Below, in pieces: positions 30,301 to 64,000 of a stretch of 64,000 bases of DNA. The position numbers were made by a program, and so were the translations under genes. Every line of letters starts with the position of its first letter. Within the stretch, counting starts at the first letter, position 1. The notes below the pieces were generated by a model. The model saw nothing but the letters and a program-made list of their open reading frames with translations. It was not told where the DNA came from and searched no databases. The stretch comes from Perna viridis (lineage: Eukaryota). The DNA lies in NCBI GenBank assembly GCA_037379345.1, contig CM074521.1, positions 25,692,704 through 25,756,703 on the forward strand, written 5' to 3'.

Positions 30301-33300
30301 TGTAATGTCAAAAAGGAATGGGGATGAAAGAACTGGGCTGCTTTAAGATTCCACTTAGCGTTAATAGAATAACACTGCTGTCACCTTTTAATCATGCATG
30401 CCTAACAATTTTACAGAGTTCCAACATTTTCTTACTTGTCTTGTATATTCGCTTTTTTCACTAGTGACAACTGGTGTTACTACTGTGCCAACTGAAACCT
30501 CTCAGCCAGTACCAACTACGAAACCAACTCCCGAAATTACAACTACGGGAGGAACAACTACAGGTATGTTTGATAAAATGGGTATTATGAATATCATTTC
30601 TAGAGGGTGCCTGAAGTGTTACTGATTACCGTTAGTTCAATAACTAGAATTATTCAATTTCAAGAACAACATTAGGAGCTTTATCATTTTATGAAGGATG
30701 GGGCCTAAGAATTAATGTTTTGAAGAGCTTGAGCTACACATGTATGAGAAAGAAGGAATTGTTACATGTATCTGCAGCATACATTGATGAGAAACGTTTG
30801 CTTACACTGAACATAGCTTGATGAAAATTGGTGGAATTTCTTATTATTTGTTAAAAGAATAATAAAAAAAGATTTGTACAGTTTACATATGCAGAGAAAT
30901 TAACTTCTCAGCTTTCCACATTATTTGTATATGTAAATTATTTTTAATCACATTTTATAACTGGATCTCATTGTATATTTTTTCGAACGGTTATCATTGT
31001 AATTAACAATGACTGATGAATACAAGAACATAGATTTGACCATGCCCTCCAAAAATATTAAGAGAATCTTTAATTTACCTTAAGGTACAACTACGGAAGA
31101 ATGTGAAAAGGTTGACATTATGGATTCAATAAGTGTTGATTTAAGTGTGAAAAAGAATGACGAAGATGTTGGTACTGATGACATCAAGGAAGACGATGAC
31201 AAGAACTTACCACTTGATGAAAACGATGTTTTGACATTGGAACCAAGCAGTCCTTCAGAAGTTGACAGCATCAACGTAAATGGAGATAACATTGATGAAG
31301 TTCTTGTCACTGTTTATGATGAGGATGGAAATCCCACAGACATTGAGGTAGTGATATCACAGATTACTTTTAACAGGATATTTAAGGAACAATTGTACTT
31401 AATATGGTTACAGAATATTGTCTACAGAAAGAGTTGTTTGGTCCAGTTGATAAATGTTAACAAAATCTGTTTAACCTTCTATAGTTTTCCATAAATGATG
31501 AGGCAATGACTGTTTTATGATGATTTGATAAACATGGTAATATGATGATATAAATATGTTTATTATTTTCATTTTAGGACACACCTGTTAAACCTGGTGA
31601 GACCCTTGACTTGAAGAACATTGTTGCCAGCAAGGTGACAGTTCAAGTCAAACCAAAAGAACCCGGAAAACCAGCTGATGTAGACAAAATAACTTTAGAA
31701 ATTTGCGAAAAACCTGGTAAGTTTTGTCTCATTTACTCTAGGTTCTGTCGTTTGGTTATTAAATTTCTTTGTTGAAACATATGAGTTTGATTATAATTAC
31801 AACACCGAAGACATACTGGCACGATGATTCACTGATATTTGTTTACTTGAAGCATCCTTAAAGATGCCATCAATTCATTTTGTGTAATGTCAAAAAGGAA
31901 TGGGGATGAAAGAACTGGGCTGCTTTAAGATTCCACTTAGCGTTAATAGAATAACACTGCTGTCACCTTTTAATCATGTATGCCTAACAATTTTACAGAG
32001 TTCCAACATTTTCTTACTTGTCTTGTATATTCGCTTTTTTCATTAGTGACAACTGGTGTTACTACTGTGCCAACTGAAACCTCTCAGCCAGTACCAACTA
32101 CGAAACCAACTCCCGAAATTACAACTACGGGAGGAACAACTACAGGTATGTTTGATAAAATGGGTATTATGAATATCATTTCTAGAGGGTGCCTGAAGTG
32201 TTACTGATTACCGTTAGTTCAATAACTAGAATTATTCAATTTCAAGAACAACATTAGGAGCTACATCATTTTATGAAGGATGGGGCCTAAGAATTAATGT
32301 TTTGAAGAGCTACACATGTATGAGAAAGAAGGAAAAAAACCTGGTGAGATTTGTTTATTTTCTCTAGGTTCTGTCTTTTGATTATAACAAAGACACCTAA
32401 GAAATACTAGCATGATGGTTCACAAATTTTTATCACGTTAGAGGACTGTCAAAGATGATGCCATCAATTCACTTTGGTTAATATGAAAATTAAATATGGA
32501 GTTCTGGGATTGGGTTTCCTTTAAGATTGGACATGGCATTTATAATACAAATTCACTATTATCACCTTTTTATCACGTATGCTTAACAATTTTATACATT
32601 TTCTCATTTGTCTTGTATTTTACTTCTTTCACTAGTGACTGCTGGTGTTACTACTGTGCCAACTGAAACCTCTCAGGCAGCACCTACTTCGAAACCAGGA
32701 CCTGAAATCACAACTCCGGGAGGAACAACTACAGGTGTGTTTGATAAAATGGGTATTTTGAATACCATTTTAGGAAAGTGCCTAAATTGTTACTGATAAC
32801 TGTAAATGCAACAAGTAGAATTTTACAAGTTTTTAGAAAGCATAAGGATATACATCATTTTTTGGAAGATCAGGTCGAAGAATTCATTACGTGCTTTGGA
32901 AGGAAAGCATTGTTCCTACAATTAAAAAGAGATTGTTGATATTGAACATTATTTGTTTAACACAATCTAGTTTAACATGAAGGAAGCATGCTTGAAGCTT
33001 GTGCTTTTGTATCTTGGGCAGTTAATGATTATTTTGACCAATACAAAAAGCTTTAAAACGAGACGTAAAAAATATTATTTGCATTTCAGTTAATATCGTT
33101 TGTTTTCAATTTTAGTTCAAACTACCAGTAGTGTACCAGAAACTACTGTGTCTAATCCATGTCTATCTGAAGAAGGTATGCAGAATCCAGCTCTGACACC
33201 AGAAATTGAAGTAACAGGCATTACAAGTGCTGATGCTTTAAGACCTAGTAATGAGCCACTTGTGGTAAAAGATGACACTGTGGAAATAAAAATAGGTCTT

Positions 33301-36300
33301 GGAGGAGTAATCCAACTTGGTTCAATTGGATTTCGTAATCAAGATAGTAACAATGTTGGAACTTTTAAAATTAGCTTGGTGAAGGAGAATGGGAACGTTG
33401 AAGAATATGAGAATGGAAAGGTTTGTATTAATATTTCCAATTCAGTATTGATCGTCGCTTAAACTGATTAAGTAGTAGTCTTTGTACGAATCATGCAAAT
33501 ACTGTAATATGTGACATACCCTAAAAAGGCTACATATTTTTATTTTTGTTATCAAGTTGCTTTATAGGTCCATATGATGAAATGTATAATTATTCATTCC
33601 GATCAGTCTGCTCTGAGTATATAATCCACATTGAAAAGCCAACAGTTTCTCTTGTACTTTAGTGTCATTTACAGAATGATCTCCCTTAATTTTGAATTCG
33701 AAATTACATTTTATATAAACTCTATCTCCTAAGAACGCAGGTTATATGATAAGCTACGTCTTAATTTCTGTTAACTTTTTAAACAAAACTTTAAAAAAAA
33801 GCATATATATTAGCTGTCCGATCATATATTCCATTTTGCATGTTTTACTCTGGAGTATTACTTAAACAGTCAAATAGTAACAGCAGTTTGTAAAAATTTG
33901 TATTTTCTGTTCTTATGATCATTGATTTATTACTGATTTCTGCAGTGTGCAGTTATTTAAACAGATTACAACATCACTGAATGATGAATGTAGATACTTT
34001 GATGTATTCATCAGTAACCTCTGCATGATATAGTCATTCAATGAAAAGTACAGTTATTTGAGTATAACTTAAAATTCAGTTATACATCATCAGTAACCTC
34101 TGCATGATATAGTCATTCAATGAAAAGTACAGTTATTTGAGTATAACTTAAAATTCAGTCATTTTTTTTTTCTAAATTAATATTTTTTTTATTTTTTATC
34201 ATTCAAATATTGTTTGTTAATTAAGTATATACCAGCTACTTGCAAACTTTATTATCAATGTAAATTAACAACATACTTTTTGACATGAATAACAAATAAA
34301 TGTTTTGCCTGTTTGCCTAAAATAAATTATGATCTTCATGGTGAACAATATTAGAACAACTGGTTAAACTCTGGCATATTGATTGCAGGAAAAAGTATGT
34401 TATTAAGTAATTTCATGATTTTTACAGGTGTTTAGCGGAAAGGAAGCTCTGGTATTTGATGAAAATACCTTTGCCAAAAAGTTAGTCGTTCAAATTCTAA
34501 GCAAAGAAAATCCTGACAGTAACTACCAGCTAGATGTTGATTTGAGAGCGTGCTTCAAGCAAGGTACTTTTTTCTTAAAATTTTCTGAAGATTTAAGATC
34601 CTGCTTCCAGTAAGGTACTTTACTCTTAAGGCTTTCTGAAGATTTAAGAGCCTGTCTTAAGTAAGGAACGTTACTCGAAAAGTTTTCTGAAGATATAAGA
34701 GCCAGATACAAGCAAGGAAAATACTCTAATAGCTTTCTGAAATACAACTGTCTTTGTGCATTATCTATATTATTCACCTCGAAACAAATTTCAGGGCTAT
34801 AATGTTAATGACTCACCTATTTATCCGCTTTCATGCCTTGAAAAGCACGTAAATTTTTTTTCTTCTTTTCTTTAGTGAATAGTTAGTTGCTGTAGAAACA
34901 AATGTTCCTTATATAGATATTACAAATTTCGAAAGGCTGTAGATGTAGAAAATTGATCTTCACAGCAATTATCAAGGGATCAAACTGTTTATGAGAGGGG
35001 ACTTACTTTAACACTAGTATTTACCTGTACCACCCGCATTTATTTTAACAATTCACTTCAAACTTTTGATGATTGCTGAGTAAAAGCTTGGATTGGATTG
35101 ATTTTCTCAGAAATCGATCAAAGAGGATTACTTTTTGAGTAGGGAACATAGTTAAATGTAATTCATTTTAGCTTGTTACCTTGGTTGCATCACAATATTT
35201 GGAAGATTTCCTTCGGGCTTTGGTGAATTTTTAGTAACATTAAATAATGTGGGTGCAATGTACAATGAAAATTGCGCAAACTAAATTATAAAAAAAACTG
35301 AAAAATCAAATCCGTTTAAACTTGGCCTCTTCCGGAGTCTTAATTTTAGAAGTCGTACACCGAATGTTTTTGAATTGAATGCTATTAAGACCGTTTTTAA
35401 CAGTATTATTTATGAATATCTGATGACCCGTATGTCTCATTAAATTTAATTTAAGTCATGAATAAGCTTGAAAAATTGTAACCATCAAAAGACGTAGCAG
35501 TTGCTTTGGCTTTATAATGATTTTCATAACTCATAAGGTTAAATTTGCATTTATGCTGTAATAAAAGTTTTGTCCTCCCCCGTAGTAGCGTCATTTTCAA
35601 CCATCTGAACTATCCGTTGTTATGAAGGCTAAAGAAGTGGGTTCATTTAAATTATGGATAATTAAACTACATTAACTATTCAGTGTCATGAAGATATTGT
35701 TTTATATAAAACTCTGTCTTAATTAAACCCCTAAACGAAGGGGGTAGTCTGTATGTTTTTCACGTTTTTGACAGTTTTACCAGAAACTCTCCATAACGAT
35801 TAGTTTTTATGTTAGGTGCATTTTGGTAACATATAGTGTATATACTCTGTGTGTTTATAAAGTATAAAGGTATCTATCAACTGAATAGATATTGGATTGC
35901 CGATTAATAACGAAAACCAAACAGAAAACCAAAACCAAAAACAAAACAAACATAAAAATAAAAACAAAACAAAACAAAAAAATGTTTATAGCATGCACCG
36001 CAAGATTGATATATTTGCTTGTCAGTCTTGTCTTAAACCAGCACTACGTTAGTAAATGCAAACAACTTTTTCACATTCGTTAGAACAGACACAGGAGCGA
36101 ATAAAAGCCCTTTACTTTCTGGAAGTCAGCATTTCAGATTATCTAACCACTGTCTCAAGGATTTTAACCCAATGTAAATCCTGATCAGTGTATAGAACAC
36201 AAGATCCACAGAGGGTGGGGCTTTGGAAAAAAGGGACTTTGTGTCATACATATTCGTTTATGTTTTTAGTAATATTGTTAAACAAAATTTAAGATTATCC

Positions 36301-39300
36301 CAAAGTTTATGTTTTTATTACACAATGTTTCACTGTCGATAAAAAATTGAATACAAGTCATACGGTGATTAGTTGAATGAAATTTACATATAAATATACC
36401 TAAAAACATTGAAAAATCCCACAGAAGTTGCACGTGTATAAGTAAACATTTCAGAATGTCGAATATGGAATTTAATAAAAAAAAATATCTTTTTTGGAAG
36501 AAAACTTGTAGACGATTATTAAAAAGTTTTTTTTTGCAAATGAGATGAAGGGAGCAAATGGCAAAATCCCACATAGCTGACATTTACGGTGCTTTTGCTT
36601 TGTCATGCTCCGAACAGATTCTGACGTTCCGGTCACCCTAGAAGCTGCAAGCTGCTGCCAGCTCTCTCAGAAATGCAAGAATCATGCAAAGTCGGGGAAA
36701 TGCAAATGATTTTACGCGACGTTATCCGATGGTAAAACCACGTTTGATTTGTATTATGTACGAGAATTTCGAAAGGCCTGTGTGCAGCGGTTAGTAAGAA
36801 AGGAAACGAGAAATGCGAGATTGTATGAGTAGTTTTTACTTGTACTTAGCCATTTTAGGCACTTATTTGCACATTAGCTTAAGCATGAGTAAAGTATCAT
36901 TAAGCCTAAAGCCAGAAAATAACCAACATTTTTTGTAGAAGGTTTGTATTAAAATAGGGAGTAATTTATGTTATGAAAAAAAAACTTTTTTTAAAACTTT
37001 ATTCAAAAAGAAATATCTCCAAATAAGTCAAAAACTCTAAAAGCCGTTTTTTATTTCACAGTTACAAGTCTAACTGAAACAACCAAACCAATTTCAACCA
37101 CTCAACCAGGTTCTACATCAACTGAAGAAGTAACAACCGTAGAAACAACTACACAGATACCAAGTGTGTATTAGATTTGATGACCATGCTATGTGACTCT
37201 AATGTTTTAAATTAATTCTGTTAATGTTTTTCTCTTTGTTGATGTTGAATTTTTCAGACCTTTCTATACGTTTACATATCTGTATCAATTTGATTCGATG
37301 GAACAGTGTAGCGAATAGAGTGGTCACATTCTGAGACGTTTGTATAATATTGATTTGTTGCGATATGCATCATTAATTTGATCCTCTATCCTACATAATA
37401 ACATCTAAATGAACTGTCCCGTACTACCATACATCGTGTACTAAGTTACAGCCCTAGATTAATCCTACCTACGAGGAGGAATGACCCGGCCAGAGAAAGC
37501 TATATATGTATATAGCCTAGCTGGCCGAGTGGTCAAGGGCGCTGGACTTTATGCAGGCGGTGTTGCCATAGATGTCACAGCGGTACGAGTTCGAGTCCCG
37601 CGGAGGGAACGACCACAAATTTGTATTGCAAATTTGACAGTTCTAACATCGTTGGGAATTTTTCAGACCTTTCTATATTCCTTAATCATTTTTACCGGAG
37701 GTCAGTCTTTAAATTTTTATCAACTTTACAATTAAACGTTTAAAAATCCGAACGTTTGTTATGTCCATAACAACAAAAGTATTAGTCAAAACAAGTCAAA
37801 ACATTTCATTGCAGGTTTGTTGTGGGTGTTTAATTGTTTTGCCTACAAAAAAAAGACAACGTCATTACAAAAAAAATTGAAAAAAAAAAATTAATCATCC
37901 TACCTGTTCTTTTTAGCTCTTGTGAGCTGTTGTCATCACTTAGCGTCTGTCTTCGTTGGTCGTGTTAACTTTTTTTTAAAATTCTTCCACTTTTAAACCA
38001 TTCTGTGGATTATTACCAAAGTTCTTAATTATACTTTAAAAATTGTGTCGACTATAAAGTCAAGAGTACATGGCTGCTTTTCCAATTTTGAAACCGCATA
38101 GGGAAATTCGCCTATTTCTACTTATATCTAAAGATTATAAGGGACATTCGAAAACATAAATGTGACCATCCCGTTTACTTACAAAACTTTCCGGGATCCA
38201 GGTGGTCAGATGACTCCTCGTCAGAGTATTTGCCTTTGAAAGGCGAAAATGGAACCTGCTGAGCGATCCCGACTTCTAGGATCCCTATTTTCTTAAACCA
38301 AATTATTTCGATAATTATATTTAAAAAAAATTGTTTCCGAATGACAAACCACTTAATTGGTTTACCACTATGTGCTCCGAAAAAGAGGGATATTGAAAAA
38401 ATTATTTTAATCTTTAATTTTTCTATTAATGCATGCACTTACATTATTTTCATTGCAGCAACCACTGTTGAAATTACAGAAATTACATCGTCAACCAACC
38501 CTATTACCGTTCCTCCAACTGGATCTACAACAGAGAAATGTGCCAAAGTAGAGGTCATGGATCCTGCAGAATATGGAAATGTTAATCTAAAACTTGGAAA
38601 TATACAGCTTCAAGATAATTTCTTATCAACGCTGAAGGACAAGGACTTGCGCGTCTTAGAACTTCAACCTGGACAGGATGACTTTACGTTTACTCCTGAG
38701 TCGTTAACGGAAGTGTATAGTGTCGCTGTTGATGCGACAAATGTTGAATCTGTTAAAGTGGTGTACACAGATGAAAATGGAAAACAGAACACAGTAAGAC
38801 CATTCCATAAATTTAGCTTTTATGATTGACCTTAATCTCTCCTTATTGAAATTAAAAGGATTAGAATTTTTTTTAAATAATGGAGTAAAAATATTAGTTT
38901 CACGATGACAAGTTATTTAGACTGCTTTCATCATAGAGGTTGTCCTCGTTTAGTCATACTATTTTTCAGTGATAATTCGACTAGGTCCAATTTTTTCGAT
39001 ATTTTATATTTTACGTGTAAGCTAGCTACATCCAGTTGAGCAACTTTTTGTTTGGTCAAATATATTTATTTTTGTGATATGTCTAAGGTACGATTTCTAC
39101 AGTATTGATGATTGTTATTTTGAAGTAAATATTTGTTGAAAAATGCTTGTACACTTCTTTGATTTCAGGTATCAGGAGAACCATTTGAGCAAATTGAATT
39201 GAACTTTGTTAGTGTGAAGTCACTAACAGTATCACTAGATCGTAAAGATCCAAACCTAAATGTGAAACTAGATCAGATATCAGTTGTTGTTTGTAAAAAA

Positions 39301-42300
39301 CCAAGTAAGACATTTGTAGCTTTGACAATACTTTTCTGATTACAATATACTTTACCTGTAGGACCTTTTTAATTACTGCAAGTTCAATAGGATGCCTGCG
39401 ACAAAAGTCACGAAATTGAACATAAGGTTTTGATTTTCCGCGTCGGCTTGGCGTCAGCACTGATGTACAATATTGATTTAACATTTTCTGATGAGGTCAT
39501 TTTTATTTTGAACCACTGGTTAACAGTTGAATAAGCATCACAACATCATTAAATTAATTAAAATTTTATGCATACCCCCTTTGTCATGGTGCATTTTATC
39601 GACTTAAAATTTTGTTAACATTTTTATCTGATTAAAACTGATAAGGTGAGTTTAACATAAACAATCGATGCTAGGTCGATCATATAAGGTATACTGTTGC
39701 ATCACCATCCCTACAATGCAGTTCCATATATCTATGTCATGTTTATGCGCCGCAATTACAGTGTTTTGTCACATACTTTCTTTTTAAGGATGTAATGTTA
39801 GGTTTTCTAAGTACACTAGATTAACTTGAATAATTTGTGTTAGGTCAATATGGTATTTAACGTATAGGTACATTTGCATGACTACTTAACACTTTCATAT
39901 ATGTTTATTGCATGTACCTCCGAGGTCATTATCAACATTTGAAGGCGAGACATATCCCTGTGCTAACAGTTTATTAAGTCAACCGAATATGCGCAAGATT
40001 AAAAAAAAAACAATATTGAGAACTTTATATTCAACATCGCAAAGTCATTTTTGTTTCGTTGGGCAACATTCATTTTTTAATTTTCATTGTTATATATCTC
40101 TGAATATATTTCTGGAAATCAATGGAGCAACAATTTAAAGGTTAATATGAAAAGAACTCTATTCAAGTAGCATTGTAAGCAATCTAATGTGGTTAAAAAT
40201 TCCACGCAGATTTGTCAAGCTCGAGAATAATGTACGAGTTATGATGTTGAAATTTCTTACTCAGGTGATAAAGGAATGTTGCCACAGATAAAAAGAAAGT
40301 CGACGATACGAAATGAGAAGTCATCGAGTTTGTCGTATACTTATATTTTTTTCATTTTCCATTGATATCTTAGAGTATGTCAAGAAATGAGGCTGACTTC
40401 AGAGTATCTGTTGAGTCCTCTATTCCAAGGTATTTTAGAATGTATGTGTTATATAAATTTTGAAAGACATTCCGTATGTCACGCGATAGATAATTTTTAC
40501 ACCTAAAGTGTTTCATTAACAGATCTCTAAGCTTACAATATATTTATTACAGCAACAAGTGCTCAAACTACTACAGCAACTACACCATTAACCAACCCTA
40601 CAACGGTTTCTCCAACTGGATCTACAACAGAGAAATGTACCAAAGTAGAGGTCATGGATCCTGCAGAATATGGAAATGTTAATCTAAAACTTGGAAATAT
40701 ACAGCTTCAAGATAATTTCTTATCAACACTGAAGGACAAGGACTTGCGCGTCTTAGAACTTCAACCTGGACAGGATGACTTTACGTTTACTCCTGAGTCG
40801 TTAACGGAAGTGTATAGTGTCGCTGTTGATGCGACAAATGTTGAATCTGTTAAAGTGGTGTACACAGATGAAAATGGAAAACAGAACACAGTAAGACCAT
40901 TCCATAAATTTAGCTTTTATGATTGACTTTAATCTCTCCTTATTGAAATTAAAAGGATTAGAATTTTTTAAATAAAGGAGTAAAAATATTAGTTTCACTA
41001 TGACAAGTTATTTAGACTGCTTTCATCGTAGAGGTTGTCCTCGTTTAGTCATACTATTTTTCAGTGATAATTCGACTAGGTCCATTTTTTTCGATATTTT
41101 TCATTTTACGTGTAAGCTAGCTACATCCTGTTGTGCAACTTTTTGTTTGGTCAAATATATTTATTTTTGTGATATGTCTGAGGTGCGATTTCTACAGTAT
41201 TGATGATTGTTATTTTGAAATAAATATTTGTTGAAAAATGCTTGTACACTTCTTTTGATTTCAGGTATCAGGAGAACCATTTGAGCAAATTGAATTGAAC
41301 TTTGTTAGTGTGAAGTCACTAACAGTATCACTTGATCGTAAAGATCCAAACCTAAATGTGAAACTAGATCAGATATCAGTTGTTGTTTGTAAAAAAACAA
41401 GTAAGACATTTGTAGCTTTGACAATACTTTAATACTTTCTGATTACAATATACTTTACCTGTAGGACCTTTTAAATGCCGCAAGTTCAATTGGATGCCTG
41501 CGACAAAAGTCACGAAATTGAACCTAAGTTTTGATTTTCCGCGTCGGCTTGGCGTCAGCACGGACGTATAATATTGATTTAACATTTTCTGATGAGGTCA
41601 TTTTTATTTTGAACCACTGGTTAACAGTTGAATAAGCATCACAACATCATTAAATTAATTAAAATTTTATGCATATCCCATTTGTCATGGTGCATTTTAT
41701 CGACTTAAAATTTTGTTAACATTTTTATCTGATTAAAACTGATAAAGTGAGTTTAACATAAACAATCGATGCTAGGTCGATCATATAAGGTATACTGTTG
41801 CATCACCATCCTTACAATGCTGTTCCATATATCTATGTCATGTTTATGCGCCGCAATTACAGTGTTTTGTCACATACTTTCTTTTTAAGGATGTAATGTT
41901 AAGTTTTCTAAGTACACTAGTTTAACTTGAATAATTTGTGTTAGGTCAATATGGTATTTAACGTATAGGTACATTTGCATGACTACTTAACACTTTCATA
42001 TATGTTTATTGCATGTGCCTCCGAGATAATTATCAACATTTGAAGGCGAGACATATCCCTGTGCTAACAGTTTATTAAGTCAACCGAATATGCGCAAGAT
42101 TAAAAAAAACAATATTGAGAACTTTATTTTCAACGTTGCAAAGTCATTTTTGTTTCGTTGGGCAATATTCATTTTTTAATTTTCATTGTTATATATCTCT
42201 GAATATATTTCTGGAAATCAATGGAGCAACAATTTAAAGGTTAATATGAAAAGAACTCTATTCAAGTAGCATTATTGTAATAAATCTAGTGTGGTTAAGA

Positions 42301-45300
42301 AGTCCACGCAGATTTGTCAAGCTCGAGAATAATGTATGAGTTATGATATAGAAATTTCTTACTCAGGTGCTAAAGGAATGTTGCCACAGATAAAAAGAAA
42401 GTCGACGATACGAAATGAGAAGTCATCGAGTTTGTCGTATACTTATAGTTTTTTTCATTTTCCATTGATATCTTAGACTATGTCAAGAAATGAGGCTGAC
42501 TTCAGAGTATCTGTTGAGTCCTCTATTCTAAGATATTTTATAATGTATGTGTTATATAAATTTTGAAAGACATTCCATATGTCACGCGATAGATAATTTT
42601 TACACCTAAAGTGTTTCATAGACAGGTCTCTAAGCTTACACTATATTTATTACAGCAACAAGTGCTCAAACTACTACAGCAACTACACCATTAACCAAAC
42701 CTACAACGGTTTCTCCAACTGGATCTACAACAGAGAAATGTACCAAAGTAGAGGTCATGGATCCTGCAGAATATGGAAATGTTAATCTAAAACTTGGAAA
42801 TATACAGCTTCAAGATAATTTCTTATCAACACTGAAGGACAAGGACTTGCGCGTCTTAGAACTTCAACCTGGACAGGATGACTTTACTTTTACTCCTGAG
42901 TCGTTAACGGAAGTGTATAGTGTCGCTGTTGATGCGACAAATGTTGAATCTGTTAAAGTAGTGTACACAGATGAAAATGGAAAACAGAACACAGTAAGAC
43001 TTTTCCATAAATTTAGCTTTTATGATTGACTTTAACCTCTTCTTATTGAAATTTTAATAATTTTAAATAAAGCAGTACAAATGTTTCACAACAAGTCATT
43101 TAGACCGCTTTCATCATAGGGGTTGTCCTTGTTTAGTCTAGTACTATTTTTTCTGTATTTATTTCGGCTAGATCCAATTTGTTTAATATTATTTATTTTA
43201 CATGTAAGCTAGTTAAACCCAGTGGAGCAACTTTTTTTTTACCAAATATTTACTTTTATAATATATCTGTGGTACGATTTCTGCAATATTTAGAAATTGG
43301 CAATGATAAAAATTTTGTCTATTGAAAAATAATATAAATTTTCCATGTGCATATTGTTCATTGCGCGAAGTGAATTAAACAAAATATGCATACGGAAAAT
43401 TTGTTATTTTTCAAAAGGCAAAATTTTTATCATTGCCAATTCTTATAAATTAATTTGAAAACATATTTTTATTTTTAAACATGGGAAAAGTAGCTCTAAA
43501 TTTAACTGAATAGGGACATGTCAATATTTTGTTATCCATTGAGACATAACAAAATTATTTTAACCAATCTGATTACAGTATTTATCTCAAATTAATTTAT
43601 TGATGATTGACATTTTGTGGTAGAACTCTCCCTTTGATTTCAGGTATCAGGAGAACCATTTAAGCCAATTGAATTGAACTTTGTTAGTGTGAAGTCACTA
43701 ACAGTATCACTTGATCGTAAAGATCCAAACCTAAATGTGAAACTAGACCAGATATCAGTTGTTGTTTGCGAAAAACCAAGTAAGAACTGTGTGTTTACAA
43801 TATAGATTTTAATCTTTAAGTTTTTCATATGGTCGAAGTTGAATTATTTGGTTGTAGAAGAACAGGTGTGATAAACTACATATGCTCTTAAAAAGGAAAT
43901 CTATTTTTCTCAGATATTTGGAAGTACAATCTCATTGTGTTAGGATGCCCAATTTACTCAATGATTAACTAACAAAAAAATATATAAAACTAAATTTAGT
44001 GAAGAAAACTGATACAAACTTTCCATAAGATTTGAATGTATGCTTCATTACAGCAACGACTGCACTAACTACAGTAGTAAGCACTGCTCAAACGTCTGTT
44101 GCAACATCTCTATCAACTACAGTTTCTCCTGGTTATTCTACCACAGAGAGATGTGCCAAGGTAGAAATCATGGACCCTGAAGAATATGGTAATGTGAATT
44201 TGAAGCTTGGAACTTCTCCTCTTGGTGATAACATTTTAGCATACTTGAAGGACAAAGACACAAAATTATTTACCCTTCAGCCAGGTCAAAATGAAATAAC
44301 ATTTGAGCCACAATCATTGACAGAAGTGGATACTGTATTAGTTGAAGGCACAAACATTGCAGATTTGAATGTGATTTATACAGATGAAACTGGAAATGAG
44401 AAGAAAGTAAGATATGTAACTGTGCATTGAAGTACTTCATTTTTATGTCCAAGATTTTTGTCCTCTAACAGTTTGATTTGTCATAGACTATTAATTAAAA
44501 ACAAACAAAAACGTTGAAAGAAGTAACACTATCTTTCTTATTACATTTTGCCAAAACAAGATTTTTTTCCCTTATCCAATGAAATGTTAAAACGGAAACC
44601 TTAAATGATGTTTACATGATCTTTTTACTTGAATTATACAACGAGTGTAATTTGAAATGAAATTTTATAGCTTTGTATTTTCTAGATTTCAGGAGAGGTT
44701 TCTGAAAGAATAGATATGAATTTTGTTACAGTGAAGTCATTGACAATATTTATTGTACGTGAAAATCCAGAGGAAAAAGTGTCTTTAAATCAGGTGTCTG
44801 TGGTAGTCTGTAAAAAACCAGGTATGGATTAAAAAGGTCAACAATCTTGTGTTGGTATTAGAAAATTTTCAGAAGTTCTTTTCTATTGATTAAAGAGGTA
44901 GACCTAGGGTAAGGGACACAACTCTTCAAAATCATTGGAACCTTTGTATTCAGCATTTAACACCAATCACGCTTAAGCATCAACGTAAGTTGGATTTATT
45001 TATTCTGTTTCAAATGAAAGCTTGATAGGTTTTGGTGAAATTGAATATACTATAAACAAATCACTGATTCCAAGAGTTATGTCCCTTACCTAGGTCTACC
45101 TCCTTAAAACGGTAAATTTTCCAAACCTGTTTTTGTTTTCAAAACACACTTTATACATTAATCACTTCAGGACTTAAATATTTACCTTTTGTTTTTTTAA
45201 TAGCAATTAAGTTTAACCCTAGAAATATGAAACAATCCCTATATGATTAAAATCCCTCGTAAAACAAAATCAATATTCAGCTACTAAAATACTAAACATT

Positions 45301-48300
45301 TGTCAAAACAAACATATCAGAGTCGAATCTGACAAGCCTTTCACGTTATTTCTCTGTTTTACTTAGGAAAAAAAGTATTAAAAAAAGAAAACCAAGTATT
45401 TAATAAAAACATATTATTAAACCAAAATGTTTGATTAAACTTATGTTTGGTCATTGTAGCAACCAGTAGTATAGCAACTACTACAACTACTGGAGTATCA
45501 GCTACAACTGTTCCTACCACAGGGACACCTGTTATTACTACAGAAAAATGTAAGACGATATTTGTTTTACTGATTGGAAGTATAAACGATTGAGTGTATC
45601 TTTTTCCTGAAATTTTATATTTACTTAAATGTCTCTTTTGTCCTTGATTGGCAGAAAAAATAGTCCATTATAGTGATATCTTAAAAGTATTTCAAGGAAA
45701 TGAAATGTGATGTCAAGGTATTTAGAGCAATCTTTTTTCTACCTTATCTTGTAGCAACAACTGTTGGAATTACCAAAACAACTGCTAGTCAAACTACACA
45801 AGTTACCACTGTATCCGCTACAGCAACACCTGGTAGTACAACAACAGAAAAATGTTCCAAGGTTGATATTATGGATTCGCAAAAGTTTGGTGAGGTTAAC
45901 CTGCATATGGGACCTCTTAAACTAGATGAAAAATATTTGAATGTGTTGAGACAGGAAGATTTTAGCAGTCTAACTCTTCCAAAAGGCATACTGGACTTAA
46001 CATTTGTTCCAGACTCGGCAACAGAAGTAGATAATGTTTTGATTGTTGCAGCAAATGTTTCAGCTATAAATGTTATTTACACAGATGACAGTGGTAAAGA
46101 AATTACTGTAAGTTATTTACTGTTTTCCTTCCCTGCATACAAAGTGTAAAAAATGTCCTTTTGTCCATATTTGTAATGTTTACTTTCCCTAAACTGTTGT
46201 ATATAAAGTAGGCCAGAGTTAGTGGCCTTTATTCAGACGTCTTAATGAACCATTTTTGCCTGAGCGAAAGGCTTTTTGACTAAGTAAAACAAATATGTCT
46301 CATACACTGCCTAACAAAGGGTTATATCTGATATCCCGATTTAATGAGAAATATTCTGTTTCTGACAAATAAAATATAATTTATGGATTTCATAATAACA
46401 CCATAACTTATGATATTCTCTTTAGATAACTAATATAAGCAAATTCATTTGCTGGCAATTTTCTGCTATCTGTTTGTAGTACAATATACCATACTCAATT
46501 ATTCGTAATGGAAGTGGGAATGTAAACATCCTAGGAAAACCCACCATTTTCATCTGAAACTCCTATACAAAGTCAGTCATTGTGGTTTTTTCTAACTTTC
46601 CGGTTGTGCCTTGACTAAATTTCTGCTAGAATCTTGGTTCACATTTAGTCTTTGACTATTCCTTTTGTCTGTTGCCGAGATCTTTTCAGTTTGGTACTTT
46701 GTTTTGATGTTTAAATGTTGTTTTTTAGGTTTCTGGCAAACCATCTGAAAAAATTGATTTGAACTTTGTCAGTGTTCAGTCCCTGAAAATATCTCTTGTT
46801 CCTGTCAGCGCTGAAGTAGAAGTATCAGTAGACAAGGTTTCAGTTATAGTATGTGTGAAACCAGGTAAAGCAACATTTTTCAAAATCTTTACATATTCCT
46901 TGTTTTCATGATGTCAAGTGAAACATTATTTCCACTTGTTCATTAAACCTAAATTAAATGCACAAAAGTATAATATTCCTTTTTTTTTTTTTTTTTTAGA
47001 AAAATTGAAAGTGCCAAAATAAATAAATGTGAATTTATAAAGTGAAATTATGTTGAAATAATTCTGAAAAAATACTTTTACACTTATGATTAACTAAATA
47101 ACATGTCTTTTTTATCTTGATGGTTTTGCATTGCGTTGTCGTTTTTCGGTCAACATGTTGTTTGATTATTCAAGAAAGCTTCAAGGGACTTAGATGATTT
47201 TTTATATGTTTGTCTAGTTTTCCTTTTTTGCCACTGTGATTGTTCATGTCCTTTGATGTATTCAAAACATTATTTTTACACTTGTTAACAACATCTTCCA
47301 GCAACCACAACGGTAAAGACGACAACCAGTAGTATAACAAGTGAAACTACTAGTGGGACAACATCATCTACGTCAACAACTCAAGGAACAACTACAGAGC
47401 CTTGTGCACAGGCTAATATAATGAATGAAGATGAATATGGCAAAGTTCCTCTTTTCTTAGGAGCAACCTCTGTATTGCCTGATGTTGTAAAGGATGCATT
47501 AAAGGATGACGATGAGAAAGAAGCCCATATACTCGATTTTATGAATATTGTATTTAAACCTAATAAACCAACTGAAGTCTTCCTAATGGAAGTATTGGCA
47601 GACAATCTTGCCCGAATGACAATTAGCTACAAAGAGGAAAATACACCAGAAGTTAAAACAGTATGTTGACATATATTCTTTTTACTTATTGTAATAAATG
47701 TTTGTGTTTAAAAAATGAAAATTTCCCAAATTACATCTGCTGAATGATTTATTTAAAGCAGTTGTCCTGTTGTACAAAGCAGAGGGTATGATATATTCTT
47801 TAAATGCATGAAATGTTAACTAATTTGTGTAACTTTACATTTAATCAACCATTCAGCGTTATGTGTGTACCATATTATAGTTTGTACTTTTTGTGTTTCT
47901 TTTTTGAAACATGCTTGCTAGGTTTACCAAAGACAATGAACCATATCACTTTGTGTCTGACAGGTTTGTTCAGTTAAGACTGTATGCTTTGTGCATTTTC
48001 TTGACTTTTTATGAGCAACTCGGCCGGTGTTTCTAGAAAAGCAGAGGACGCTTACCCTACCGGTGCACCTGGTCTATGCTCCTAGTTTTTAGTGGAGTCC
48101 GAGTTGCTCATTTGCTTTTGATACTTTGTATGTATGATTTTAGTTACTTTATGTTCTTTGTTGTGTATGTCTGTTTTCCATGTCTGGTCTTTGTCACCGG
48201 ATTACATTTTGTTGATTACCGCTATAACATTAGTTCCCTTGATTACTCTTTCAAAAATGATAGAAACATACATCAAGGAATTAAGATGTTGTCTGTCTTG

Positions 48301-51300
48301 TTTACACTGGTGTATTGTTCATTCAGGTTTTGAGTAGGCAGATTTCACTGTGCAAATTTTATGATTGGGGAGTTATACTCGATTTGTTTATGCATTTTAC
48401 AGATCAAAGTAAATGAACCTTCAAAACCTGTTAATCTTAATGGGGTAAAAGTTGAAGAGCTGACCATTACTTTTATTGCTGTAGACAAATCAAAAGACAT
48501 ATTAGTGAACAAGCTATCAGTTTCTGCATGTGTTAAACCTAGTAAGTAACAAGATACTGTGTATGGTATATGAATGTGCCCCAATTCAATTGTGCTAATG
48601 ACATTCTTCATAGATATAAGAAAAATGAATTTTTTTCCCAAAAGGATACAATTTGTTAGAGGTGATTTCTGTCTGAATTAAGTCAATGCCAATTTTCCCC
48701 TTGTTCCTTGCTTTTTCATATTATTTTTTGCTTTAATGATATCTACAACATGATACTGTAATTGTTCTTCATTTTCAAGGACTAAAGGTTTTTTTTACGT
48801 ATCACTTCCTGTTAATATCTAGTTTATCTGGTAAGATTTTAAATTTATATACTTCAAGTTGATCAGATTTGAAATATATCAAAAATGCTTTTGAACATTT
48901 TTAGAATGTGTGCAATTTATAAATGTATATTTTAGTTACAACGACAGCCCAACCTGAAACTTCTCAAGCAGCCCCAACAACTGAATCAGGACCTGCATTT
49001 ACATCAACTAGTGGTATGTAAGCTTCCTGATACAATGCATAGTCAGAAACTATATTTTCTTTACATTACTTTGATCTTAAAATTGTCATTTCAGGGTTTC
49101 CAATTCACATGACCAAAACACTATCCTGGTAAGCCTTATCCAAACTGAAGATCAAAAATGTATATCATAAAGAAAACACACTTACAGTCGTTATATAATA
49201 AATGCATGCAGCAACAATATTAAAGTGATAAGATGAAAAAAACAACAAAATCTTCATTGTCCATTAAGTTACCACTATCCTGACTGATGATAAAATTCAA
49301 TGCATTGCTGAGTGCTAAAAAGATAGCATGTAGTACATGTATGCAGTTCTTGAAATTACATTGATATCTCACAGATAATTCCGGTGAATAGTTAAACATG
49401 AAAGTTCCAAGGGTTTCAAAATTGATTAACTAGCATTATCAGGTGTGCTTCCAATGCTGATATTACAACCCTGCACTATTTTAGGTTTTCATATGCAGTC
49501 AAATGAGAAGCCTACGAAAATATGTTTATGCAAAATAGTCTTTATCATAAAATATAATATAAAATATAATAATTTCAAATATATAGGATTAAAATCATTG
49601 ATAGAAGATGACAATGAACTTTTGCACAGCTGTTTGAATATGATCGTATAACATTATTTTGCCGCTTGCAAAATCTTCACCAAAACAATTCTAATTTGAC
49701 AGGAATGCTTTTTGCATTTTATTTACACAGTACATGGTTTAAACAAGAGATCAATGATTGCGTATTAAGGATTGAATATATTTTGTATTTGTATTTAATT
49801 TTTATTTTTCCTAAGAGTTTCAACTTCTTCTACAACTGTTCAACCAATTCAGAAAAGAAACAGAAGTAAATGAATACTTGTTTTCTCTGTTAATCCAAAT
49901 TATCAAATTGTTTTACAAATTTTTGCTTAGTTTCAACTGCCACTACAACTGTTCCGCCAACTACATCGACTCCACCAGTTTCAACCCCTGAAACTTGTGA
50001 GGAGGTTGACAACATGGGACCATTATCAGAAAACATTAAAGAGGTGACAAAGAATGGTAATCCATTGAGTGAAGATGATAAGAACAAATTACAGCCTGGT
50101 GATGATAAGAAGTTAACTGTATCTAAGACTGACACTTTGTCGATTGTTATGGAAACACAAGAAGAAATTGATAAAATTGAAGTACTAGAAACAACCAATG
50201 TAAAGGAAGTAAACGTTATCCTGAAGGACGAAGATGGAACAACAGTTCTTGTAAGTATCAATAAATGTATTCATACTCTCGAAATTAATTATGTTTTTAA
50301 TTTCATTTTTTTTTTCATTTCTTTATTTCATGCATTATAACCAATCTTCAGTATAATTGCAAAATGCACACACTTTTATGATATTAGTTTCTATGTTACC
50401 GTGTTGGACTTTTTATCTTTTGTCGTAAAAAAAGGTTCACATGTCCAATGGAAAATGTTTAGATGTAACATGCATTAACTGTCCCAAGCAGCATTGGCGA
50501 TTTTCAAAATAAACAAGAGCTTTCATTCTTAATAATCGAATTTAAAATATTAAATCTTTTTGCCTTGTAGGATGAGACCATTTCACCAGAGGAAATTGTA
50601 AATGTTCCAAATAAGGTAGCTGGAAGTATCACTTTCACATTTGTACCAACAGACCCAAATGAAGATATGGAAGTAGGATCCGTTTCTGCTGAAGTTTGTG
50701 TTAAACCAGGTAAATGTTGTGATTAGATTTAAAGATATATTTAGAACACGTAAGATCTTTAATTCTGGTTCTTGTGTGATATAATTGTCGAGCAAACATG
50801 ATAATAGAGTAATTTGTGTGAAATGTCCTTGAATTGATAAACATTTGGATCTGTGGTATATTGAGAGAAATGTTAGATTAGGACTAGGCATTTTTATGGG
50901 AAATGAGGATCAAGAAAGATTTGAATTTGTAAATTGATTTTTTAAGATTCGTTTAAATTCTAACTTATATTTAACTTAATCAAAACAAGAAGTGTAAAGT
51001 TTTGTTATAAGTGATGAAATGTTTTGGTTGATAATATTATATTATCATCTAAATCTTACTTATTTTTGGAGTTGAGAAAAAAACTATTTGTGAAATTTTA
51101 ATTTTCAAAGGGAATCAGCCATATGACTATTGTTGAAACGGAAAATTTACACCATTTCACTGATGCTTTCCTTCCCTTAATTCAGTATCTCCCGAAATAT
51201 TGGACTACAAACAACCTTATTGTATTTAATTGTTTCATATGGAAACACAGAAACACACACAACGTCAAAAAAAGAGAATTAAACACATTAGTTGAGCAGA

Positions 51301-54300
51301 TGACTTGTATATTTTTTTGTTTTTAGCTGATATTATATATCAGTAGGTTATGTTTTGTTTGTTAATTGGAATCTTTATTAATTTTAAATCGAAATAGATC
51401 AGATTGATTAAGTCATTTTTCCCTAACAGTTACAACTGCCACTACAACTGTTCCACCAACTACATCGACTCCACCAGCTTCAACCCCTGAAACTTGTGAG
51501 GAGGTTGACAACATGGGACCATTATCAGAAAACATTAAAGAGGTGACAAAGAATGGTAATCCATTGAGTGAAGATGATAAGAACAAATTACAGCCTGGTG
51601 ATGATAAGAAGTTAACTGTATCTAAGACTGACACTTTGTCGATTGTTATGGAAACACAAGAAGAAGTTGATAAAATTGAAGTACTAGAAACAACCAATGT
51701 AAAGGAAGTAAACGTTATCCTGAAGGACGAAGATGGAACAACAGTTCTTGTAAGTATCAATAAATGTATTCATACTCTCGAAATTAATTATGTTTTTAAT
51801 TTCATTTTTTTTTCATTTCTTTATTTCATGCATTATAACCAATCTTCAGTATAATTGCAAAATGCACACACTTTTATGATATTAGTTTCTATGTTACCGT
51901 GTTGGACTTTTTATCTTTTGTCGTAAAAAAAGGTTCACATTTCCAATGGAAAATGTTTAGATGTAACATGCATTAACTGTCCCAAGCAGCATTGGCGATT
52001 TTCAAAATAAACAAGAGCTTTCATTCTTAATAATGGAATTTAAAATATTAAATCTTTTTGCCTTGTAGGATGAGACCATTTCACCAGAGGAAATTGTAAA
52101 TGTTCCAAATAAGGTAGCTGGAAGTATCACTTTCACATTTGTACCAACAGACCCAAATGAAGATATGGAAGTAGGATCCATTTCTGCTGAAGTTTGTGTT
52201 AAACCAGGTAAATGTTGTGATTAGATTTAAAGATATATTTAGAACACGTAAGATCTTTAATTCTGGTTCTTGTGTGATATAATTGTCGAGCAAACATGAT
52301 AATAGAGTAATTTGTGTGAAATGTCCTTGAATTGATAAACATTTGGATCTGTGGTATATTGAGAGAAATGTTAGATTAGGACTAGGCATTTTTATGGGAA
52401 ATGAGGATCAAGAAAGATTTGAATTTGTAAATTGATTTTTTAAGATTCGTTTAAATTCTAACTTATATTTAACTTAATCAAAACAAGAAGTGTAAAGTTT
52501 TGTTATAAGTGATGAAATGTTTTGGTTGATAATATTATATTATCATCTAAATCTTACTTATTTTTGGAGTTGAGAAAAAAAACTATTTGTGAAATTTTAA
52601 TTTTCAAAGGGAATCAGCCATATGACTATTGTTGAAACGGAAAATTTACACAATTTCACTGATGCTTTCCTTCCCTTAATTCAGTATCTCCCGAAATATT
52701 GGACTACAAACAACCTTATTGTATTTAATTGTTTCATATGGAAGCACAGAAACACACACAACGTCAAAAAAAGAGAATTAAACACATTAGTTGAGCAGAT
52801 GACTTGTATATTTTTTTGTTTTTAGCTGATATTATATATCAGTAGGTTATGTTTTGTTTGTTAATTGGAATCTTTATTAATTTTAAATCGAAATAGATCA
52901 GATTGATTAAGTCATTTTTCCCTAACAGTTACAACTGCCACTACAACTGTTCCACCAACTACATCGACTCCACCAGTTTCAACCCCTGAAACTTGTGAGG
53001 AGGTTGACAACATGGGACCATTATCAGAAAACATTAAAGAGGTGACAAAGAATGGTAATCCATTGAGTGAAGATGATAAGAACAAATTACAGCCTGGTGA
53101 TGATAAGAAGTTAACTGTATCTAAGACTGACACTTTGTCGATTGTTATGGAAACACAAGAAGAAGTTGATAAAATTGAAGTACTAGAAACAACCAATGTA
53201 AAGGAAGTAAACGTTATCCTGAAGGACGAAGATGGAACAACAGTTCTTGTAAGTATCAATAAATGTATTCATACTCTCGAAATTAATTATGTTTTTAATT
53301 TCATTTTTTTTTCATTTCTTTATTTCATGCATTATAACCAATCTTCAGTATAATTGCAAAATGCACACACTTTTATGATATTAGTTTCTATGTTACCGTG
53401 TTGGACTTTTTATCTTTTGTCGTAAAAAAAGGTTCACATTTCCAATGGAAAATGTTTAGATGTAACATGCATTAACTGTCCCAAGCAGCATTGGCGATTT
53501 TCAAAATAAACAAGAGCTTTCATTCTTAATAATGGAATTTAAAATATTAAATCTTTTTGCCTTGTAGGATGAGACCATTTCACCAGAGGAAATTGTAAAT
53601 GTTCCAAATAAGGTAGCTGGAAGTATCACTTTCACATTTGTACCAACAGACCCAAATGAAGATATGGAAGTAGGATCCATTTCTGCTGAAGTTTGTGTTA
53701 AACCAGGTAAATGTTGTGATTAGATTTAAAGATATATTTAGAACACGTAAGATCTTTAATTCTGGTTCTTGTGTGATGTAATAGTCGAGCAAACATGATA
53801 ATAGAGTAATTTGTGTGAAATGTCCTTGAATTGATAAACATTTGGATCTGTGGTATATTGAGAGAAATGTTAGATTAGGACTAGGCATTTTTATGGGAAA
53901 TGAGGATCAAGAAAGATTTGAATTTGTAAATTGATTTTTTTAAGATTCGTTTAAATTCTAACTTATATTTAACTTAATCAAAACAAGAAGTGTAAAGTTT
54001 TGTTATAAGTGATGAAATGTTTTGGTTGATAATATTATATTATCATCTAAATCTTACTTATTTTTGGAGTTGAGAAAAAAAACTATTTGTGAAATTTTAA
54101 TTTTCAAAGGGAATCAGCCATATGACTATTGTTGAAACGGAAAATTTACACAATTTCACTGATGCTTTCCTTCCCTTAATTCAGTATCTCCCGAAATATT
54201 GGACTACAAACAACCTTATTGTATTTAATTGTTTCATATGGAAACACAGAAACACACACAACGTCAAAAAAAGAGAATTAAACACATTAGTTGAGCAGAT

Positions 54301-63740: not shown

Positions 63741-64000
63741 GTAAGTATCAATAAATGTATTCATACTCTCGAAATTAATTATGTTTTTAATTTCATTTTT
63801 TTTTCATTTCTTTATTTCATGCATTATAACCAATCTTCAGTATAATTGCAAAATGCACACACTTTTATGATATTAGTTTCTATGTTACCGTGTTGGACTT
63901 TTTATCTTTTGTCGTAAAAAAAGGTTCACATTTCCAATGGAAAATGTTTAGATGTAACATGCATTAACTGTCCCAAGCAGCATTGGCGATTTTCAAAATA

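Follow-up and report, generated by a model that had tools for sequence, protein, structure and literature searches.

The 64,000-nucleotide (nt) window analysed in this study (C11:25692704-25756703 of a 723-Mb genome that was searched as a whole; AT-rich, GC fraction approximately 0.32) is occupied by one plus-strand gene composed of repeated exon cassettes, and the present analysis concerns one of its modules, domain B, at 33116-34563. The modules of this gene, at least 70 in number, extend over about 200 kb of the plus strand; the gene spans at least C11:25667908 to 25846063 and probably reaches C11:25863689. Linker exons encoding Pro/Thr/Ser-rich (PTS, mucin-type) sequences sit between all modules, and the modules in the window belong to seven types, designated A to G. 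The first-pass annotation had linked domain B to the discoidin (F5/8 type C) fold and had regarded A and C-G as its degenerate relatives.

Domain B is encoded by two exons. Exon 1 (33116-33420; 2 nt plus 101 codons) was defined by its translation, an RNA contig, and the family profile and alignments, and exon 2 (34428-34563; 45 codons plus 1 nt, ending in phase 1) was defined by its translation, the RNA contig, and hhalign. They are separated by a 1007-nt intron (33421-34427) with GT..AG ends in phase 0 (K|VF), and the splice signals are ttttAG|TTCAAA at 33116, AAG|GTTTGT at 33420/33421, acAG|GTGTTT at 34428, and CAAG|GTACTT at 34563. With phase 1 at both flanking introns and phase 0 internally, B is a symmetric 1-1 cassette. 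Positions 33118-33420 translate to QTTSSVPETTVSNPCLSEEGMQNPALTPEIEVTGITSADALRPSNEPLVVKDDTVEIKIGLGGVIQLGSIGFRNQDSNNVGTFKISLVKENGNVEEYENGK (101 residues), which contains, in this order, the Cys at residue 15, C-LSEEGM, LRP, IKIGLG, LGSIGF, NVGTFKISLVKENG, and YENGK. Positions 34428-34562 translate to VFSGKEALVFDENTFAKKLVVQILSKENPDSNYQLDVDLRACFKQ (45 residues), which contains VFSG, AKKLVVQI, LDVDLRAC, and the C-terminal Cys at residue 42. RNA-derived reads were mapped across 33000-34700, and a 661-nt RNA contig (run X1, word depth 169) linked 33418|34426 (+2), skipping 1007 nt with GT..AG ends. Upstream, this contig extended past 33114 into ...GAAATCACAACTCCGGGAGGAACAACTAC of the plus-strand PTS linker exon that precedes B (32636-32734; cactAG|TGACTG ... 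ACTACAG|GTGTGT, phase 1 at both ends), and its downstream loose end, AAGTCTAACTGAAACAACCAAACC, fell in the next plus-strand PTS linker exon (37062-37163; tttcacAG|TTACAAG ... CCAA|GTGTGT), which is RNA-joined to B exon 2. Since spliced RNA joins both B exons to the flanking linkers, the observation is real and the module is expressed; the exon model rests on spliced RNA and goes beyond inference. The spliced sequence quoted in the first-pass annotation was borne out, and all of its motifs were found in the translation.

A natural intron-free homologue of B (L016:3298-3750) was folded with AlphaFold2 (AF2), which yielded an all-beta model with a mean predicted local distance difference test score (pLDDT) of 90.2 and a predicted template modelling score (pTM) of 0.85. 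A Foldseek search of the PDB with this model returned 74 matches at E ≤ 1e-3, the first being neuropilin b1b2 (E 1.2e-5), and the further matches included CBM32 modules, factor VIII C domains, galactose oxidase, APC10, and IFT25. The best 50 matches listed by Foldseek and by VIA were all galactose-binding-like jelly-rolls, and none was Ig-like. The homologue model fits the discoidin/F5-8C/CBM32 fold, which is characterized by an eight-stranded distorted jelly-roll beta-barrel of about 150 residues, and the Ig-like, cadherin-like, or disordered outcomes that the first-pass annotation had named as contrary to its proposal did not occur. Residues 5 to 148 of the model, which include Cys5 and Cys146, aligned end to end with residues 274 to 427 of neuropilin-1 b1, whose terminal disulfide pair we take to be C275-C424. 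The N-terminal Cys was invariant in five exon-1 pieces, and the C-terminal Cys was invariant in ten exon-2 pieces. The model suggests that the Cys pair of B occupies the canonical terminal-disulfide ends, where a putative disulfide would close the barrel. Judging from the alignment to the modelled homologue, B exon 1 would account for approximately the N-terminal two thirds of the jelly-roll.

Sequence comparisons were made with a 34-row alignment of the B family (A4), which was that of the folded homologue and in which B exon 1 and its paralogues were entered as separate rows. MAFFT alignments mixing exon-1 and exon-2 fragments (A2 and A3) were dropped in favor of A4; in them, the exon 1 tail was misplaced onto the C-terminal strands. 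An hmmsearch of PDB sequences with the A4 profile matched the CBM32 chain 4a42_A with an E-value of 5.6e-4, placing the invariant LRPG on LRDGN..TLW. Exon-level alignments of canonical discoidin domains from the same genome (A9 and A10) were also compared with the B family. By hhalign, A4 aligned with canonical exon 1 over 75 columns from the Cys (P 6.7e-4; P 0.019 with the 5-row alignment A1), and the exon 2 alignment of the B family (A7) aligned with canonical exon 2 over 41 columns, in register to the terminal Cys (P 3.1e-4). When the template columns were shuffled 150 times, 0-1 shuffles reached the observed scores. These values are individually weak, yet all the alignments are in register and consistent with the structure. 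The elements of the discoidin signature kept in B are C-x4-GM, LG..gF (for VTGv.tQG), NVgTFkIslv.e.G, VFSG, and l.v.lraC. A protein-language-model atlas provided an early lead: F5_F8_type_C accounted for each of the ten top-ranked named clusters of B exon 1, with scores of 0.90-0.92 and few shared features.

The position of the intron provided a further marker, which we treated as a supporting, non-defining character of metazoan discoidin domains. A PF00754 scan of the same genome yielded 53 exon-level matches, 15 of which end at position 82 of the hidden Markov model (HMM) and 5 of which start at positions 84-86. Four canonical domains were read in the DNA, and all were split in phase 0 (..GTGHA|IFEGTYD, ..GRGHE|VFQGSVNYD, ..HAEPR|LFGGNND, and ..NGQKK|gtaaat). 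B reads ..YENGK|VFSGKEA, with its phase-0 intron just before the (V/I/L)F.G strand, as in these canonical domains. The intron argument of the first-pass annotation, which had been drawn from factor VIII, is supported in substance by the canonical F5_F8_type_C domains of the same genome. Not all discoidin domains of this genome have the phase-0 intron; in most discoidin exons of a hemolectin-like gene (L006-L011), the site equivalent to the B intron lies within a single exon. The homologue fold, the CBM32 sequence match, the profile alignments, and the intron position support the discoidin interpretation of B, which is an unannotated variant of a known discoidin (F5/8 type C/CBM32) domain and no new kind of domain.

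Relatives of B were found in other animals. An exhaustive HMMER search of 1.84e9 representatives with the A1 profile returned 32 proteins at E ≤ 1e-3, and a common frame, consisting of a PTS linker, C-x4-GM-x-(D/N)P..IP, LRPG, NV.tF.v, and a terminal aC(F/Y)E, was present in all family members read. Together with B, these relatives form a small and diverged family of metazoan domains (C-x4-GM-x-(D/N)P..IP ... LRPG ... NV.tF.v ... aCFe). The 4464-residue protein P0005 (GCA_910592395.2) contains three VWD, three C8, a TIL, and seven LDLa domains, with many B-type domains after them; P0015 (GCA_932274485.2) comes immediately after a 4007-residue VWD/TIL/C8/LDLa gene model; and P0012 (a Logan contig) lies downstream of C8, TIL, and LDLa exons. 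Because of this context, B-type domains are considered typical of proteins with the architecture of gel-forming mucins, hemolectin, or adhesive proteins. In two other genomes, B-type domains are split as in the window (about 98 plus 45-60 residues, phase 0), and intron-free copies are present at three loci (L016, L017, and L021). Other searches were less productive: searched as a profile against the PDB, the 5-sequence exon-1 alignment A1 gave 0 matches, a word-index protein search gave nothing for B exon 1 or for one complete homologous domain, and the same search with type E gave only the unspliced genomic open reading frame (ORF) P0033. Literature searches on mucin and discoidin in invertebrates yielded nothing specific to the B-type domain family.

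P0005 also contains a second two-Cys domain at residues ~1503-1655 (CLENAKTIDYLKSDDVLVTASSS...DGINW...|...ISVHACYE), which is split after a 103-residue first exon (L020:24887-25195) like the B-type domains. From its sequence, this domain looks more canonically discoidin-like than the B-type. Its first exon had no Pfam match at E ≤ 10, and F5_F8_type_C was absent from the whole-protein scan at E ≤ 0.01.

The other module types of the window, all on the plus strand, were compared with B. The A cassette, defined by the ORF map, splice sites and phases, and a scan of its own genome, occupies 1-32300 with about 20 copies at a period of ~1584 nt. It consists of a PTS exon, exon 1 (...TEECEKVDIMDS...NPTDIE|), and exon 2 (|DTPVKPGE...LEICEKP+1), and one example copy has the coding part of exon 1 at 31093-31347 and exon 2 at 31578-31716. 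Types C (3 copies), D, E, and F lie within 38530-48541, with an exon 1 of 88-89 residues from TE.C and an exon 2 of 45-46 residues ending in C.KP+1 nt; their exons 1 and 2 are at 40627-40890 and 41265-41400 (C), 44143-44406 and 44686-44821 (D), 45844-46107 and 46729-46864 (E), and 47394-47660 and 48403-48541 (F). The G cassette, with about 10 copies at a period of ~1500 nt, occupies 49894-64000 (for example, exon 1 coding part 51486-51749 and exon 2 52069-52207). All seven types have a phase-0 intron at the equivalent place, share a common Cys frame, and end in phase 1 one base after C-x-K-x. The phase-0 boundaries read ..TDIE|DTPVKPG in A, ..KQNT|VSGEPFE in C, ..NEKK|ISGEVSE in D, ..KEIT|VSGKPSE in E, ..EVKT|IKVNEPS in F, and ..TTVL|DETISPE in G, and the exons encode 85-90 residues from three residues before the Cys (exon 1) and 45-46 residues (exon 2). 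All A/C-G-type copies retain the intron, whether they lie in the window, elsewhere in the gene, or in its minus-strand paralogue, and no intron-free module was found among them.

In hhalign comparisons, the B family (A4) matched A/C-G exon 1 (A5) with a probability of 90.6% (P 1.3e-6) over 80 columns, from the Cys to NV..V.V..E.G, and B-family exon 2 (A7) matched A/C-G exon 2 (A6) with P 9.2e-5. The alignments of A/C-G with canonical discoidin were not significant (P 0.43 and 0.22). Since B matched both canonical discoidin and A/C-G, whereas A/C-G did not match canonical discoidin, B serves as the bridge between them. By profile comparison, A and C-G are further-diverged copies of the module of B, and their homology to B is shown at this level. 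The earlier proposal that they are degenerate relatives is therefore supported by profiles and identical exon structure, and not by structures of A/C-G. In the atlas, the top cluster for G exon 1 was F5_F8_type_C (0.91), which is a lead only.

Two statements of the first-pass annotation about B held in part. It had called B the least-derived member, and this stands among the seven types of the window, but a more canonical discoidin-like domain is present just upstream of the array. This two-exon domain (L028:5587-5862 / 7827-7973; G000:C11:25662587-25664973, plus strand), located 3 kb upstream of the first A module, reads EVCADILG...WTPTE|VYEGNID...IELIGCL, with phases 1-0-1 like B, and its second exon matched Pfam F5_F8_type_C with an E-value of only 0.021. 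This domain probably belongs to the same gene and would be its first globular one. B had also been described as single-copy, which is correct within the window, where tblastn gave only echoes in A exon 2 (E 0.4-1), but not genome-wide. The genome search identified four B exon 1 paralogues on the same chromosome within about 330 kb (47-57% identity, E 1.9e-6 to 5.7e-23), and second exons were located for three of the four (35-49% identity to B exon 2). At least one of the paralogues is transcribed, as indicated by loose ends at 33168/33200.

These results are best explained if B is a diverged discoidin-type bead of a giant, mollusc-type mucin-like protein, from whose module A and C-G were derived, and if the beads bind or cross-link; we hold this reading with high confidence, the binding being its inferred part. 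One very large spliced gene would encode the mucin-like product of a mollusc-type invertebrate, which is probably secreted, although no signal peptide was sought. Extended, putatively O-glycosylated Pro/Thr/Ser linkers would alternate with compact domains of about 130 residues in the manner of beads on a string. B would fold as a discoidin-type distorted jelly-roll of the galactose-binding-like superfamily, nearest to F5/8 type C and CBM32, and cassette duplication would have produced all types while preserving the 1-0-1 exon structure. The beads would be folded nodes that resist proteases, and their loops opposite the termini would bind glycans or partner proteins; this binding would cross-link a mucus or adhesive network, much like CysD in vertebrate mucins. 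The proposed binding and cross-linking role draws on the roles of discoidin and CBM32 relatives and on the conserved motifs outside the core.

Several observations weigh against this reading. In B, the Trp residues, GN.D, and RYVRI (RY.R) of the discoidin signature are lost or changed. The modelled structure belongs to a homologue with ~20% identity, not to B itself, and the AF2 model of type C exon 1 alone was unusable (pLDDT 62.7, pTM 0.42). No VWD exon was found directly upstream of the gene in the window; the convergent paralogue cluster on the minus strand has VWD exons at its head. In Pfam scans, performed exon by exon for B and its paralogues and on four complete homologous domains, F5_F8_type_C gave no match at E ≤ 10 for any of them. 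Neither exon of B reaches the curated gathering threshold of PF00754 (28.2 bits), and canonical PF00754 exons of the same genome, used as a control, scored 28-72 bits. These scans confirm the escape from Pfam detection, which the first-pass annotation had put forward as a possibility for A and C-G. The only Pfam matches in the scans were Big_9 on exon 1 of one paralogue (E 0.011) and scattered noise. This Big_9 match, the repetitive strand patterns, and the confusion of the end of exon 1 with exon 2 by MAFFT would fit an Ig-like, cadherin-like, or bacterial-Ig-like sandwich or a disordered segment, in which the discoidin likeness would be a chance pattern of beta-strands. The confident homologue model (pLDDT 90), its best 50 listed Foldseek and VIA matches, all galactose-binding-like, and the CBM32 sequence match make this scarcely credible. 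It is also improbable, albeit less so, that the B-type is a galactose-binding-like jelly-roll of a separate lineage (for example, APC10/DOC-, PITH-, or IFT25-like) that does not descend from metazoan discoidin domains and resembles F5/8 type C by analogy alone. The C...GM start, the two terminal Cys residues, and the extracellular mucin setting are all in keeping with discoidin. The position of the phase-0 intron is exactly that seen in canonical F5_F8_type_C domains of this genome, and discoidin-like domains co-occur in the same proteins and gene cluster.

The main competing explanation, a real possibility that we nevertheless consider the less probable one, accepts the fold and regards the beads as inert, that is, as disulfide-stapled rigid spacers that stiffen a glycosylated thread with no ligand and no cross-linking. 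The canonical ligand-contacting features of discoidin and CBM32 are not conserved, the beads are invisible to Pfam, and dozens of near-identical copies look as if they had been amplified for length and not for specificity. However, the most conserved residues (GM.(D/N)P..IP, LRPG, and NV) are not merely those of the hydrophobic core, and seven divergent types are retained in a fixed order within one gene. In addition, almost every discoidin or CBM32 relative is a binding module. A bolder proposal in the opposite direction is that the beads are lectin-like and bind O-glycans of the same or neighboring chains, which would make the gene product a self-cross-linking "lectin-in-mucin" polymer, independent of CysD and based on a new family of the galactose-binding-like clan; we regard this as unlikely.

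The reading of B as a diverged discoidin-type bead was further compared with known systems. In contrast to PF00754 and CBM32 domains, the B-type lacks a Pfam score, the conserved Trp, GN.D, and aRYvRi.P, has its own invariant motifs (GM.(D/N)P..IP, LRPG, and NV.tF), and occurs as a bead between PTS linkers in dozens to more than 100 copies per gene. Hemolectin/hemocytin and the sea-star Sfp1-type adhesive proteins combine VWD-C8-TIL modules with discoidin domains. B relatives likewise occur in or beside proteins with VWD, C8, TIL, and LDLa. The discoidin domains of those proteins are canonical and few, whereas the domains described here are Pfam-invisible, alternate with mucin linkers, and were amplified as exon cassettes. 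Like CysD of MUC2, MUC5AC, and MUC5B, B is a small globular domain that interrupts long PTS regions and is stabilized by a disulfide, which is putative in B, and we propose for it a role like the one proposed for CysD, as a non-covalent cross-linking node. This analogy is functional only; the folds and Cys patterns are unrelated, and the number of Cys residues is 10 in CysD and 2 in B.

The fold, discoidin domains beside VWD modules, and the cassette amplification of mucin genes were already known. What is new, and modest, is that a diverged Pfam-invisible discoidin-like family and its derivatives serve as the bead of a giant mucin, marked by the 1-0-1 exon structure; neither a new fold nor a new principle is revealed. 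The globular beads of giant mucus and adhesive proteins of invertebrates have no score in Pfam, which leaves these proteins poorly annotated and leads gene callers to split their genes into many fragmentary ORFs. The 1-0-1 cassette offers a handle for annotation, which a new family model within the galactose-binding-like clan could, for instance, exploit, and the intron position is a clean marker of homology where sequence similarity is nearly gone. Diverged discoidin beads also suggest testable binding functions for research on mucus and bioadhesion.

Two other loci on the same chromosome contain related modules. A convergent minus-strand paralogous giant gene or gene cluster is located at G000:C11:25976169-26269612 (L002-L004, L012, L024, and L025), with VWD exons at 26257142 and 26269364, G-like modules at 26231381-26244765, a PF00754-positive exon at 26047736-26047921 (30.3 bits), and three B-type exons at 26021562, 26006289, and 25976169. 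The separate hemolectin-like gene (G000:C11:27108437-27155840, plus strand; L006-L011) contains VWD exons followed by at least seven PF00754-positive exons, and this canonical VWD and F5_F8_type_C gene lies 1.4 Mb from the window.

Repeats were also observed in and around the exons of B. The B intron holds a perfect 79-nt tandem duplication (1.9 copies) at 34008-34159, and its stretch at ~33456-33700 stood out in RNA-like runs by a very high word depth and by many loose ends; this stretch looks like a dispersed repeat, similar to a short interspersed nuclear element (SINE) or a miniature inverted-repeat transposable element (MITE), that is transcribed elsewhere. The tail of B exon 1 (NVGTFKISLVKENGNVE, 33355-33420) resembles the core of exon 2 (FAKKLVVQILSKENPDS, 34470-34530), and MAFFT aligned one onto the other. 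An old internal duplication may account for this likeness, as may the pseudo-symmetry of the jelly-roll. At the end of exon 2, Tandem Repeats Finder and the sequence revealed 3.5-4 tandem copies of a 51-nt unit on the plus strand (34539-34741; 77-79% matches), which consists of the last ~25 nt of exon 2 plus the donor site, and the later copies have in-frame TAA/TGA. These tandem donor copies may be decoy or alternative donors, or they may have arisen by replication slippage at the exon end; the RNA contig splices at the first of them.

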